The notes under the pieces are model-generated. The model did no database searches, had not been told where the DNA came from, and saw nothing but the letters and a program-made list of their open reading frames with translations. A stretch of DNA of 50,930 nucleotides, filler included, from Bipalium vagum (taxonomy: Eukaryota): the NCBI GenBank assembly GCA_037834085.1. It is 3 parts of 3 records of this genome, joined end to end, with 100 filler letters (N's around TTAATTAATTAA, not from the genome) between each part and the next. Parts side by side here need not be neighbours in the genome. Positions count along the whole stretch, not along the records: positions 33,124 to 50,930 come from JBBMKC010049956.1; 2 more parts are not named here. One strand, given 5' to 3'. Both the position numbers and the translations under genes were made by a program. This document shows positions 36,323-48,500 of this stretch, piece after piece; position 1 is the first letter of the stretch; every line of letters begins with the position of its first letter.

Positions 36323-37627
36323 CAGTCTGATACATTAAATTGTCAAGTACAAAAAATTCAATACCTTTTCAGTTAAATATTTTTATATATATATATATCA
36401 GATTATTTATCGTTGCCAGTTCTAATTTAAAGTTTTGTAATTCGTTTTTTTAAATCATTTAAGTGTTTTTTGCCTTATAATTCAGCTAGAATATTAGTTT
36501 AGTTTAATTTCCAGTATATTCCTCAAATTATGCGTGGTTTCGATTTAACGCCTTTTGGAAAGGACAGATTTATGCATTACATGCGGAATGGATATAATAT
36601 CAGATTGCCAGTACTCTTGATTTGACTCTCTCTGCTGTCAGTAAATATTGCCTGCGATAGATCAATAATGATCTGCCACATGAAGGAACTGTATCAAATG
36701 TAAGAGACTGCGAAAAACATTAGATATGTTTGACAGACATATTGCGAGATATGATGAACAACATCCATTCAAAGGAACTCGGCAAGTAGCATCAGACTTC
36801 TCTGAAATCCAAAAAATATCATATGGCACGATCAATCGCCGCTTGAAGGATATTGGTTTTCTTTCTTTTTCTCCAGCACACAAGCCCTTCCTTTCAAAAG
36901 CTCACAAAGCAGCGCGTTTTTTGTGGGCACAGCAGCATCACTAACCAATTGGTCGGCAATCATCTTTAGTGATGAATCAAAATTCCAGATGAGTAATAGA
37001 CAGCAGTTCGTATGACGTAGGAAAAGCACTAGACTGCAGGATCGGTTTGTTAACCATCTTCCAAACAGAAGTTCATATCACTGCATTGTATGGGAATTTT
37101 TTTCTAGAGATGGTTACAGTAATTTGGTTAGAATTCAATAGCGGCTTAATTCTGAAGGATATGTTGAGCTATTAGAACAGAACTTTCTTCCTTTCGTCGA
37201 TCAAATGAACAACAAAGAATTCTACCACCAAGACAATGCACTAATCCATACTGCCAAATTTACAAGAGATTGGTTTGATAATCATGACTTACCTCTTATG
37301 CCGGGGCCAGCAATCAGTCCTCATGCTAACTCCATCGAAATTGTGTGGGGACGCATGAAACATCAGCTTAGTCATATGCTCATAAAGCCAACTGCATCTG
37401 ATGCCCAAGTTCAGCAAGTGTCAAGATTTGTGGACTACTATTATTGGAGAAGAGAATTACCGGTATAGCCTTTTAAATTCTATGGAGCGAAGGCTTTCCG
37501 CAATAATCGATGCACCTGGACGATATTCCAAATATTAACAATATATTGTTTTCTGTATATAAATATAATTTCCATATAATATAAATGTTGTAATTATTTT
37601 TACTGGACAATTTAATGTATCGCACTG
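36323..37627 (+). mobile_element. full-length but inactivated Tc1-like (DD34E) transposon
   Basis: TA|CAGTCTGATACATTAAATTGTCAAGTA ... TACTGGACAATTTAATGTATCGCACTG|TA. Motifs KPFLSKAHKAARFLWA, IFSDESKF, YHQDNALIH and PAISPHANSIEIVW; frameshifts and stops present. Confidence 0.92.
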
Positions 37628-37861: not shown

Positions 37862-39605
37862 TTAATTTTCTGAAATTCTACAGCTGTCACAGATTCCGCG
37901 TAAACTTTTCCAAAACGCCAACTTCCGGCAGTGATCCTCAGAAAAGCGCTCTCCGTGCCAGTCCGTTCCATCAATAACAATGAAGGACCTTGACTGTCTA
38001 TCATAACGAGGCAGACGGTCGAGATGTCTACGCGAAAATTAAATTTCATTTTATTTTATTTGTTTATTTAACATGAACGTCAACGTTCCAATCCTTGGCA
38101 ATAAAAGGTCAGAAATAAAAGTGCTTTATAAAATTATTTACTTACCCCTCATTTATAAATTTTCCAAAATGTGCCATGAATACCTTGGACGCCTCCTTCT
38201 CACCTTCCTCTGCAGTTATATAACTTTTAAAAGGGTTTCCAAAATAATAATAAAGCTCTGAAGCATGCATTGCCTCTTTTATTATGGGCAACTCATAGGA
38301 CGGTGCGATAGTCCGGTGCCACAAGTAATACACGTCTTTGATTGAATCACTGATTACATTCGCCATCTCCATAATATCATATACGAACATGTCATCTCCG
38401 ATGATCCTGTCGAGAACATTTAGGGTAAGGACTTCTTCAACGTTGTATTCTTTCTTGATTCGATCTATAATTGAGTCGGGACACTTGCTCGGGTAATGAG
38501 GATAATACTCCATTTTCTGATTTAAGTAGTCCATGTCAATCTGGATGTTACCCTCCTCTTTAATATTCTGAAAATTCATTTTTCTAAACATGTAACCTTC
38601 GTTTTCGGAATGTAGAAACATTGTAGGACACTTTTTGAATTGTGAATTTTCAAGCAAAATTTTTGGATGGTTCTTTATTAGATCTCCATCAACAAATGGA
38701 GTCCAACAAAGTTCAATGAAACCCTTCACCAGCTCAAAATCATGAAGAAACTCTCTAAAATTCAACTTTTGTAAGAAGTGAATGATTTCCGTCTTGTCCT
38801 TCTTTGGCATGTTGTGATCCCACCTTAAAGTGAAATGGAACTTTTCGAGTATCTTATTAACAGCGGTCATGCTACCTCTCATGATCTCCTCTTTCGAGTG
38901 TACACCCCAATTCGAAAGGCATACCCCACTGGCAGGGATAGCTTTGTTGAAATAAGGCCAACTTTGTTCAATTATCAAATGGAGGGAAACTGAACATCCT
39001 CCTGCGCTATTTCCGGAAATGGTTATATTTCCTGAATCCCCATTGAATACCGATATATTTTCATGAATCCATTTCAGGGCACAAACCTGATCCCACATTC
39101 CGAGATTTCCATTCATTTCTTCTTCATCCAAGCAAATAAACCCCAGCAACGCTAGCCGATAGTTGAGACTGACCACGACTATCTTCTCTTGACTTGCCAA
39201 TATTGCCCCATTGATCCAATCATAGCTGGAACTTCCGTACAAAAAGCCACCTCCATGAACATATGCCAGGACAGGTCTTTTCTCTTGTCCTCTCAAAATA
39301 TCCACAGGACACCAAACATTAAGATATAAGCAATCTTCATCTTGAATTCCCTTCGGGTGCCAGAGAGAGCCTTCTGGAATTACATATTTCAATTCTGATA
39401 GAAACGATTGAGGAGGATAAGTCTCAAAATCTGGTTTATTGATGATTTCATTCTTGAAGGTGTCACAAGGTTGAGGTTTCCTGAATCTTAATTCATTGAT
39501 GGGTGGCTTACAATAAGGTATGGCCAGGAACTCAATAACGTCGTTCTCCAAAACACTTTTCACCACACCCTGGACCAAGCCATTAGCTACTTTCAAGGTC
39601 TCCAT
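37862..39605 (-). CDS. type-B carboxylesterase, cholinesterase-like (541 aa, 2 exons)
   Basis: FLAIPYCKPP, EDCLYLNVW, HGGGF, LNYRL, GNSAG (Ser), SENEG (Glu), AMHASEL (His). Intron 38145-38028 (GG|gtaagt...cgtag|A) adds GHLDRLPRYDRQSRSFIVIDG...HCRKLAFWKSL, the expected P-x-Y and FW tail of the family. Confidence 0.93.
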
Positions 39606-42795: not shown

Positions 42796-45700
42796 GACTT
42801 TAAAATATATTAGGTCTTTATGTTTGTTTTAATAATATTGGTCAAACATTTACATGTTCAGTTTATCAATCATCGAGTCGTTAATGCATCAGAAGTCATT
42901 GTCAGACTTTGAAATTGACGATGTCATTTTTATCAGTGGTAATAATTACACAAGTTCCGTAGCTTGTCACCATTGTTCTCAGATCTGATCCAGAACAGCA
43001 ATTTTAATTGCTTAACGGAACTGGAATATGAAAAGCTGCGAATTTTTGTCATCATTATCAAGTCATATTGGATTTATTTCTGTCTCTGCTTCATAATATT
43101 TAATTGTGCAAGTTTGAAGATGTTTTGTGAAACTGAATCGATTACAAAATTAGAATATATTGGAAATGTAATCAATGAAGACATTGATTTTGTAATTGAA
43201 CAAATCAATGATATTAATCCAATGAATTTTGAAAACAATCAACTTAGAATAAGCGATAAAATATCGAATTTTAAAATCGAATTAATTAAAATCAAAGTAA
43301 ACTTTTTTTGTGATTTTTTTTCTTCAGTGAATTTATTCTGTCAGCAAGCTGTCATGGAGGGTGGGGAGGAGTCTTGGGAATATTACATAAATATTTTTAA
43401 GTGTGGCTTAGATGAGTTTACTAACGTTTCCAAAATAATGAACAAATCTTTATTGTTTCAGGTAAACTGTAATTTTTTTTATAAAATTAAATTTTAAATG
43501 AAAAGTTGTTAACTTTCTAAAAAATATTTGGTCAAATCAATTATTTTTGTTTTACTTTTCCACTTTTACATAATATTTAAAAATTATATTTCAAATTATT
43601 CAAAATGTATTTAAAGTTATTCAACAATATATTTAAAGTTTTGTAAAAAGAATACCAAATTTTAAAATCGAATTAAATATAAATGAAAGGAACGATTTGA
43701 AGTTATTTATTTAGTAAGGAAGTTGTCATGGGATGTGGCAATGAGTTTTAAGTTTATTACGCAACTGATTTTTAAAGTATGCTTTGAATGACCTTATTAA
43801 TTTATTGAATAACTTTATTTCACATCGTAAAAAGATTTTCATGTTTGGTTTTAAATATTTTCCACCTGTTGAATTTATTTATCTGATCTTTGCTTTGTAA
43901 TTTTCTCTATCATTGAGTTCTGGCAAATTTTGGGATAATATCGCTGTGGACAACAGATTATGTCGTCTATGAAAATCCAGTATATGGGATTATCAAGGGT
44001 AAGGAATTCAACTAAATTCCATCGTCAGGTTAGTGTTAATGTATAATCAGGTTAGGTCTTATTATTACTATTTCCAATGAGATTCAACCACAAGGTATTC
44101 CATAAAGGTAGACAAAGTCTCATTTGTAATTCATCCCAACTTTCCAGTCAGTCATCTGTAGGTTTTGGTCCCTCATTCGATATCCTATAGTGGATAATGT
44201 GTAGGAGACAATCACAGTTATCCATCCTCACCTTCCCCTTTGGTAAAAGTAAAATTCATAGATGGATACACGAAAAAGAAATATTCACACAGCTCCATGT
44301 AGTAACTACACATATTTGTTTATGATTCAATAGGCTTGTTCGAAGGTCCAACTGCTTTTTGGGGAACTGGTTCCAGATGTTGTAAAAGCCATGAACTTCC
44401 ATTCTATTGTAAAGATGAAAATTATGTATGGGAAATTTACAAACTACCTTTCACCAGCAGTTATAAAACTTATCGTGTATGTTTTTAAAAAAAAAGGAGC
44501 CACAGGAAAATTGAGGATAAAAGGTCTCCCAAAATAGGAGTTATATATTTTTCTCCATAAATAAACATATATAATCATTTTTATACACCCATACTTAGTA
44601 AAATTTTATCACCGGTGCAATTGCTTACCTGAAAGATTGGAATTTTAGTTTGAACTTTCAATTTAGCAATTAAGTCTTCATATTTCACCGGATTGGTACA
44701 GTTATTATCAACAGAGTACCTAATGTCATTATAAGGAACCTTGAAGTCTACTAAATTCTATTGTTTCTTCCCAGATATTCTTATCATAAAATCCAGTCGT
44801 AGTGAAGTCTCCAACTCCACTAGTGTCACATCAAAATCTATGCCTGTTCCCCATAGAGGACCAACACGTGGTTGGTGTATTTTACTCGAGTGTTGTGGAT
44901 GTAAAAGGCAACTGGGCCTGGTTTTTATCGATAGTCCTACATCACCTACAGATCTCACCCTTGTATTTTAAAATGTTAAATAATCTAATTCTGAATGCAA
45001 GACTATTTTTCTGGTTTTAATGATAAAATGGCATTGACCACTGGATGGAAATTATTGAATCATTTTGATTTTATTGAGTAATTTTAAATATATATTGTTG
45101 AATTACACTTTATATGCTTTGAATAGCTGTATGAATATATTTTGCGCATATAAACCTATGAATTTAAGTTTTAAAAAGCCGATTTTTAAAACATGTTCTG
45201 CTTCATGCAACATAAAAGAAAAAGATAAAAATATTTTGACTCATGATCCTTTCTAGTGTTTAGAGACATCTACAATATCTGAAGACAAAACCGCAATCGA
45301 TACATTTCGTAAATTGAAACTGTTGCTTGCCAATCAAGTACAATGCAAACAAGGTTTCGGAAATTTTTCTTAACATAAAAGGAATCTTAAAATTATATCC
45401 ACCAGATCTTGATGCGAGTCACGAGATTTTACTACAAACTAAATCGCTATCTAACATTATAAAGGTTTGAGCGTACTTATAGTAACAGGACTCATATTAC
45501 TCAATCTTCATTGTTTTCAGAGAAAAGCATCGGACAATGTCGACGGTCAAGAAAAAATCGAGATGATCCAAAAACATTTTGCTGATGATCGAGATATTTT
45601 AGCCGTTATGAAATGTTCGTTCCTAATTTGACCAATTAAAGTCTCCAATTCTATTGGTTGTTTAATGAACCAATGGAATCATTTCATCAAAAATTCATAA

Positions 45701-46763
45701 TAATATAAAGAATAATTTACTTTTTAAAAAACAAATTTCCTTCTCATTTTTTCTCATTAAAAATTATGAATTTTAATAGTTAAAAATATTAATGTGTTAC
45801 TAATGACAACGAGGTTGTTTTTATTGCTTTATTTCCTTTGTAGTAGATTTCGGCCTTTGCTCACAGTGCCGATTGATCAAGTAAATGTTTATTGATGTTT
45901 TTCTGAAGAGGTAAAGGTTATTCTCCTTATTTTATTAGCCAATCAGCGGAATCCAGAAAAAGCATTTCAAAGGAACAAAGTGATTTTTCTGTACGCTCTA
46001 TTGATTTTTTAAATTTTCGATTGTTGCACATTCCAAAGACCCTAAACCCAAGGACTCAGCGAAAAAAGCGGACAAATTCAATTTTGTTGACTGCAGCGAT
46101 GGTGATACGAGCTGTAAACGATATCCTGTGACGTCAAGTCCTATCGATTGCGTGGAATCAGCGGAATCTTTAAATGTGATTTGTCGAGGTGATGGTGTTC
46201 GTCCTGGTAATACTGATGGTTGTCGTGGTAACGGTTCCGGTCATAGTAATGGTAGCATCAGTCATGGTGACAAAACAAGCGCGTCTCCCTACCGAAAGCA
46301 GAATAAACGGTCGGCTGAAACCATACACACTAGATTTTCGATTAGACAACGAGATACTGCGGCTAGGTCAGCAGTCAATTCTGTTGCTGGCCAGTCAGAT
46401 TTGGTGGTGATCGCGTCTGATGTTTCCTCGGTGGTTTCTTCGGTCCATGATCAAACAGGTTGGTTTTCTTCAGATTAATTAACAACAAAATCCTGTTTTA
46501 CGGAACGTTCCTTTTTCTCATGAACCGTGTTTTATTATTAATCTTTTGTCAAAACTTCAGCCGGCAAGCATTTATGGACTTTCGATGAATCGTTTTTCGT
46601 GTTCAAAGGCGTTCAAGAAAATTTGACATGGATGAAAATCAAAGAAAAGTACTTCAAATCGTCTTACCGCAGCAATATCAACATCAAAGATCGTTGGCGT
46701 ACGCTTCAGAAACAACCGAAAATTCTCGAACAAATGCGGATGCAGTACAGTAGTGAAAAGTAG
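42796..46763 (+). CDS. TRF: telomeric repeat-binding factor (TERF1/TERF2-like): TRFH domain, linker, telobox Myb; N-terminus unresolved
   Basis: Phase-consistent exons 42796-42813, 42862-42938, 42983-43061, 43113-43296, 43345-43461, 45257-45353, 45406-45464, 45521-45614, 45844-45880, 45939-45979, 46039-46458 and 46561-46763 give about 474 aa. The last exon, WTFDESFFVFKGVQENLTWMKIKEKYFKSSYRSNINIKDRWRTLQK, is a telobox Myb. N-terminal ITKLE and LIKIKQAVMEGG resemble human TRF1 TRFH ITPLE and LIKIQAIAVCMENG (recalled from memory). Confidence 0.85.
44630..45060 (-). mobile_element. RLE-type non-LTR retrotransposon (R2/NeSL/Utopia-like) 3' coding relic inside the TRF intron
   Basis: ICR*CRTIDKNQAQ (degenerate CCHC knuckle), then TSLRLDFMI...NLVDFKVPY...VKYEDL (degenerate RPD..DVKVP..KY endonuclease). 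Confidence 0.65.
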
Positions 46764-48029: not shown

Positions 48030-48500
48030 AAAACAAAAAAACAAAAGCAATCTTATTATTCGTATTTGTTCTAAATTCAGGAACTATCAGCTGAGTCCGT
48101 ACGTTTGTTCTTATAAACAAAGCAAACCATACACATTTCTTTCCGTTACTGCATCCTCTTTTTATACTTTGATTAACATTTGATGTTTTTCCCAGGAAGA
48201 TACTAAGTCGAAGGTTATAATGTTGATCCATAGAAATTATATTTTAAAACATAAAACAAAAGCTAAATTTTAAATGACAAATTACAGCGATATATAAAAA
48301 ACAATTTCCAACACCAACTTGGCCATTTTTGAATTTTGCGTACCATTTCCTTGCAGTGGGTTTAGTAATGGCACTTTTTCCGTACACCATGCAAATCTCC
48401 CGAATAGCTCGGCAGCATTTTGACCTCGATGATAAGCAAAGAAAAGAAGATGTCGAAAATGTTCCTTTTATCCACCGGGTAATCATTTTTATAAATCTAA
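48030..48500 (-). mobile_element. mariner 5' relic
   Basis: RAIREICMVYGKSAITKPTARKWYAKFKNG is the mariner N-terminal HTH. Confidence 0.75.

Follow-up and report, generated by a model that had tools for sequence, protein, structure and literature searches.

We report here the analysis of a predicted gene on the plus strand of a 50,930-nucleotide window of the Bipalium vagum genome (assembly GCA_037834085.1, record JBBMKC010049956.1 for the part concerned); all positions are counted along the whole window. Between 42854 and 46763, short open stretches lie in successive different frames, and they can be joined into an 11-exon reading frame whose last exon carries a telobox Myb domain of the TRF2/TRF1 type. 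We lean towards the view, without great confidence, that this is one gene of 11 exons whose product of about 470 residues would be a diverged TRF-like protein binding duplex telomeric repeats. The Myb domain carries this reading. The N-terminal region, where TRF1 and TRF2 have their TRFH domain, and the junction that links it to the Myb-bearing part are weighed below, together with the alternatives.

Gene model at 42854–46763

The piece is AT-rich (GC 0.22–0.40 per 1-kb window). All frame-keeping GT...AG pairs between adjacent open stretches were listed on the plus strand, and the best chain runs through 11 exons from the ATG at 42854 to the TAG at 46761–46763, i.e., 1413 nt (a multiple of three) encoding 470 amino acids. 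Its ten introns are all GT-AG; seven of them are 44–62 nt long, the others 102, 229, and 1795 nt, and the acceptors are mostly preceded by a pyrimidine tract. Please note that an open chain alone is little proof of a gene, because GT and AG are common in AT-rich DNA. Several points count for this chain being more than chance, among them the tight clustering of the intron lengths, the codon usage, the lack of an in-frame Met in exons 8–10, and the textbook acceptor before exon 8. Codon usage was scored with a measure trained on the 487-codon esterase open reading frame (ORF) nearby, for which background windows average −0.58 bits/codon, and the model frame has the best score in nine of the 11 exons. 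For exon 1 the model frame scores +0.27 bits/codon and the alternative frames −0.37 and −0.26; exons 1–7 taken together reach +16 bits versus −128 and −133 bits, a margin that is due in part simply to the model frame being free of stop codons.

The original prediction had proposed a chain of twelve exons joined at GT-AG ends. A complete frame-preserving chain from ATG to stop does exist, but it needs 11 exons, not twelve. The first mini-exon of that chain (42796–42813) was set aside; it has no ATG and is unnecessary, the ATG at 42854 being in frame. A 24-nt intron (42939–42962) leading into an ORF at 42964 had also been proposed but does not preserve the reading frame; this is kept instead by an acceptor ending at 42982, which gives an intron (42939–42982) of 44 nt with a good donor, GTAATA. 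The ORF at 46128 that the chain had included is part of the longer exon 46053–46458. Within the long ORF 42985–43461, the intron between exons 2 and 3 is the least certain; if retained, it would add 17 hydrophobic residues. Exon 10 joins exon 11 in frame from a donor at 46459, in phase 1 and with a split codon GCC. The predicted exons are listed in Table 1.

Table 1. Exons and other features of the predicted gene, in window positions.
Feature	Position	Strand	Remarks
Exon 1	42854–42938	+	ATG 42854, in-frame stops directly upstream; donor GTAATA at 42939
Exon 2	42983–43061	+	Acceptor ends 42982 (TTGTTCTCAG); phase 1, split codon GAT
Exon 3	43113–43296	+	51-nt in-frame intron before it, weak sites GTCATA...GCAAG
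Exon 4	43345–43461	+	48-nt in-frame intron before it (GTAAAC...CTGTCAG)
Intron 4	43462–45256	+	1795 nt; sole in-frame join, phase 0, CAG/GTAAAC ... TTTCTAG/
Exon 5	45257–45353	+	Ends NQVQCK
Exon 6	45406–45464	+	52-nt intron before it, phase 1
Exon 7	45521–45614	+	Weak donor GTTCGT at 45615; unspliced frame stops at TGA 45629–45631
Exon 8	45844–45880	+	229-nt intron before it; strong (textbook) acceptor TTATTTCCTTTGTAG at 45843
Exon 9	45939–45990	+	Alternative donor 45980/acceptor 46038 likewise in frame
Exon 10 (hinge)	46053–46458	+	Ser/Gly/Asp-rich, without Met, without Pfam domain
Exon 11	46561–46763	+	Acceptor AG ends 46560; telobox Myb, predicted fourth helix, stop TAG 46761–46763
K-D-R-W-R codons, recognition helix	46686–46700	+	Read from the sequence; aligns to TRF2 IKDRWRT

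Intron 4 probably holds an inserted element, which lies between inverted repeats at 43597–43632 and 45090–45125 (36-nt arms, 78% complementary) that flank about 1.5 kb. The element resembles a non-autonomous DNA transposon inserted in a formerly short intron; the ORFs inside it have no Pfam match.

The telobox Myb domain of exon 11

Exon 11 encodes a genuine telobox Myb domain of the TRF type, by its sequence and by its predicted three-helix fold. The protein searches were run exon by exon. When the Myb exon was compared with all PDB chains by phmmer, the top 15 matches were TRF2, zebrafish Terfa, or TRF1 (best E 1.9e-4), with an identity to TRF2 of ~38–39%; a generic Trichomonas Myb follows the TRFs, and the plant TBP1 proteins come after it. 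Pfam returned only a sub-threshold match to Myb_DNA-bind_4 (E 0.025). An AlphaFold model of the exon, built on a six-sequence alignment, has a pLDDT of 92.4 and consists of three helices plus a fourth, C-terminal one. Foldseek with this model gave TRF2/TRF1 Myb domains as its top eight matches (probability 0.97–1.00, rmsd 1.6–2.0 Å over 51–53 columns).

The domain is C-terminal in the product, 13 residues short of the stop, and its helix 3 carries an intact K-D-R-W-R motif, which is critical for TTAGGG recognition (PMC8653790). Since the K, D, and R contacts are kept and TRF2 and TRF1 are the best matches, the Myb is of the TRF type and not of the type of TERB1, a meiotic telomere adaptor. A final exon with a telobox Myb containing IKDRWRTL, as originally predicted, can thus be read directly from the sequence and has TRF2, Terfa, and TRF1 as its best PDB matches; in the longer signature quoted with it the telobox is present, but some spacings are wrong by one residue.

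A HMMER search with the Myb exon through 1.84 billion representative proteins found 26 relatives at E ≤0.001 (best 1.1e-11). None is near-identical, therefore the gene is not in that library. The top relative, P0001 (Oikopleura dioica CBY24704.1, E 1.1e-11), comes from a tunicate; it is a Myb-like protein and has K-D-R-Y-R in place of the motif. This tunicate match stands beside the report of a published survey that no TRF ortholog occurs in tunicates (PMC8653790). A first metagenome scan for relatives found nothing, and a second one found 80 telobox loci with 31–45% identity; the metagenome comparison was made without locus L026, which is from a human-gut metagenome.

Only one ortholog-like sequence was found, a 201-residue fragment (UniParc UPI00060D2FA4, here P0008). 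It is truncated at the N terminus and lacks Myb helix 1. Its identity to the Myb exon is 44% (tblastn E 1.4e-12), and its Myb has the same helix 1–2 loop, two residues shorter than in TRF2 and TRF1, as exon 11. Used as a query, P0008 retrieves only itself in the database.

The fourth helix (46713–46757, Myb exon residues 52–65) is confidently predicted behind the recognition helix. P0008 and cestode telobox proteins (e.g., P0011) likewise extend beyond helix 3. Plant telomere-binding proteins have a Myb extension after the recognition helix. The plant TBP1/TRFL proteins, which share the telobox Myb, are the next telomere-binding family in the PDB after the TRFs, with scores below those of TRF1/TRF2 (E 0.06–0.19), and their alignments to the exon reach residue 59, beyond the third helix. 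The predicted fourth helix recalls this plant extension and may or may not be its equivalent.

One gene or two across the stop at 45631

The junction 45614/45844 decides between one gene and two. In the two-gene alternative, which we regard as unlikely, exons 1–7 would end at the TGA 45629–45631 and encode a helical protein of about 250 residues with an unrelated function, and a short second gene downstream would encode only the hinge and the telobox Myb. Two observations at this junction, together with a series of results from the N-terminal region given in the next section, weigh against a single TRF-like gene. One is the weak donor at 45615: left unspliced, exon 7 reaches an in-frame stop 15 nt further on, and the only in-frame donors ahead of this stop, GTTCGT and GTTATG, are weak. 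The other is that P0008, aligned to the genome with free splice sites, retains no exon other than exon 10 and the Myb exon when the intron penalty is set to a realistic 14; with a low penalty the alignment overfits. Two genes would also account for an ATTAAA at 45635 and for an open path that starts at an ATG at 45803 and joins exon 10 via 45881/45946 and 45980/52.

This path has its own difficulties, however. The exon beginning at ATG 45803 would run through the pyrimidine tract of the textbook acceptor at 45843, a Phe/Leu-rich leader would sit on a nuclear protein, and no use would be made of the region's two strongest acceptors. Exons 8–10 lack a Met in the frame that P0008 supports, therefore the part with the Myb requires coding exons further upstream; exon 8 in particular is taken as internal because it has no in-frame ATG.

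P0008 also bears on the junction. Its residues 86–148 match exon 10 (YPVTSSPI versus FPVTSTPI; tblastn E 0.12), a score reached by one of 300 shuffles, and its first residues match the end of exon 5 (NQVQCK), with an E of 4.5 if this match is taken singly. Residues 1–85 are colinear with exons 5–9 and score better than 294 of 300 shuffles, the other six doing at least as well (p about 0.02), which speaks against two genes. When residues 1–148 are set against exons 5–10, all 300 shuffles score lower. The matches of P0008 to the Myb exon, to exon 10, and weakly to exons 5–9 therefore favor one gene spanning the stop at 45631. We consider the link across this stop suggestive, for a gene that is predicted as a single one, and the original claim of a hidden gene plausible, the basis being splice logic, codon usage, and one weak orthologous fragment.

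The N-terminal region and the TRFH question

If the locus is a single TRF-like gene, as we favor, its Myb domain would read the TTAGGG-like telomeric repeat of the organism in the major groove. The helical N-terminal region of ~235 residues (exons 1–7) would then be a module for dimerisation and partner docking, like TRFH in TRF1/TRF2, because a single Myb would bind only weakly, and the 170-residue low-complexity hinge (exons 8–10) would connect it with the Myb. No telomere-type repeat array of at least three units is present in the piece.

The original prediction had given the product the complete TRF1/TRF2 architecture. Sequence and fold bear out the Myb half of it, but the TRFH half is unsupported by Pfam, PDB, profile, and fold searches. 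The peptide segments that had been quoted are all found, in the order given, in the translation of the chain; their proposed likeness to the TRFH motifs of human TRF1 looks reasonable but is putative.

The N-terminal exons contain no Pfam family, TRF included, even at E up to 10. With these exons phmmer found no PDB match, a word search turned up no relatives, and nothing useful came from the protein atlas. The ORF 42985–43461 is the sole N-terminal stretch that was folded, and it still contains two in-frame introns; its single-sequence model is all-helical at low confidence (pLDDT 43.7) and unusable, and the empty Foldseek result obtained with it is uninformative either way at this pLDDT. Comparison of this ORF by hhalign and BLASTP with the helical N termini of two metagenome proteins, P0003 and P0005, gave no match.

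P0003 (locus L001, 2001–3785) and P0005 are intronless, come from ENA metagenome data, and have a helical N terminus of ~220 residues followed by a C-terminal pair of telobox Myb domains. This N terminus looks TRFH-like to the eye, but Pfam and PDB profiles detect no TRFH in it; the Pfam TRF domain is absent from the other relatives examined as well. A two-sequence profile of the P0003 and P0005 N termini matched no TRFH structure in the PDB, and the two are therefore unusable as a bridge. P0008 is no help for the N-terminal domain either, because it has no further relatives in the database. The upstream regions of the 80 metagenome telobox loci show no similarity to exons 1–10, and the Pfam TRF domain was found in none of the ten metagenome loci scanned for it. 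In the invertebrates described so far, TRFH was found by BLAST and has kept ~36% identity to its vertebrate counterparts (PMC8653790), so a TRFH in this product would be unusually diverged. These TRFH negatives are an absence of evidence, not a refutation; the region was examined in pieces and without relatives for an alignment.

That TRFH went undetected by sequence, profile, and fold would equally suit one gene with an N terminus of another kind, i.e., a telobox protein specific to its lineage that would either be telomeric and dimerise through some other module, or act in transcription or on chromatin by means of a TRF-like Myb. Telobox relatives without a Pfam TRF domain are numerous in the databases, and their architectures vary (multi-Myb, double Myb, and the cestode proteins). 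Telomere proteins also evolve fast, and C. elegans is reported to have adapted Myb modules themselves for dimerisation (PMC11032478). We nevertheless find an N terminus of this kind improbable. The parts of the product match TRF in size and order (~235 helical residues, a hinge, a single C-terminal Myb), its Myb resembles TRF2/TRF1 more than it does any other Myb of solved structure, and the negative tests are weak, with the domain searched in pieces and without an alignment.

Far less probable still is a TERB1-like adaptor with a helical repeat N terminus: TERB1, which is ancient in metazoans, does combine a helical N terminus with a C-terminal TRF-like Myb, but it is much longer, with an ARM repeat region of ~370 residues (mouse 16–384, Myb 715–747; PMC7227075) against ~470 residues for the whole product here and ~235 for its entire N-terminal region, Pfam shows no ARM family in any exon, and the TERB1 Myb is only 25–29% identical to TRF1/2 and has its K, D, and R major-groove residues substituted with loss of DNA binding (PMC8867601), whereas here these residues are kept and the identity to TRF2 is higher.

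Comparison with TRF proteins and significance

Myler et al. 2021 (PMC8653790) define TRF by two domains, a TRFH and, at the C terminus, a TRF-like Myb with the motif K-D-R/K-W/Y-R. Like TRF2 and TRF1, the predicted product has one telobox Myb, at its C terminus, in which K-D-R-W-R is present, and its length and the order of helical N terminus, hinge, and Myb are similar. It differs from them in that TRFH similarity is undetectable, in the helix 1–2 loop of its Myb, which is two residues shorter, and in the fourth helix predicted behind its recognition helix. By eye it also has neither a basic or acidic N-terminal tail nor an obvious acidic iDDR-like patch before the Myb. The survey that gave the definition found exactly one TRF gene in each of 16 invertebrates, with arthropods and nematodes excluded, and none in tunicates (PMC8653790). 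Compared with these single invertebrate TRFs, the Myb here is of the same type, the K-D-R/K-W/Y-R motif is present, and size and layout fit; their TRFH is detectable by BLAST, whereas here the exon-by-exon searches returned no TRFH match.

Single TRF genes being already catalogued in those invertebrates, the gene described here is a useful annotation rather than a surprise. Still, duplex telomere-binding proteins evolve fast and the survey left gaps, namely the arthropods and nematodes that it omitted and the tunicates for which it was negative. An intact TRF-type Myb in a compact, AT-rich invertebrate genome is a concrete candidate for the telomere-binding factor of the organism. If the N-terminal region is a TRFH, it would show how far this fold can drift in sequence; if it is not, the gene would add to the examples in which a TRF-like Myb is joined to a different dimerisation module. 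The stronger claim, that the product is the TRF ortholog of a lineage without a catalogued TRF and that its TRFH has diverged past all sequence detection, seems doubtful to us; if true, it would extend TRF-based shelterin to that lineage with an extreme TRFH variant.

Neighboring features

Remnants of two transposases were noted around the gene. On the plus strand at 36726–37465 lies a broken Tc1/Tc3-type transposase, with a Tc3 helix-turn-helix (E 1.1e-13) and a DDE_3 fragment (E 2e-7) in separate ORFs, and on the minus strand at 48247–48486 lies a fragment of a mariner/Mos1-type transposase (HTH_48, E 6.9e-10). The esterase ORF used for the codon-usage score (38142–39605, minus strand) is unbroken and encodes a type-B carboxylesterase/cholinesterase-like protein of 487 residues. 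The protein atlas clusters nearest to it are mostly arthropod, a loose pointer at most, and to judge from its relatives this genome and its near kin seem to be missing from annotated databases. Its best relatives, all of them metagenome or UniParc records, are 50–53% identical to it, and named animal proteins only ~30%.

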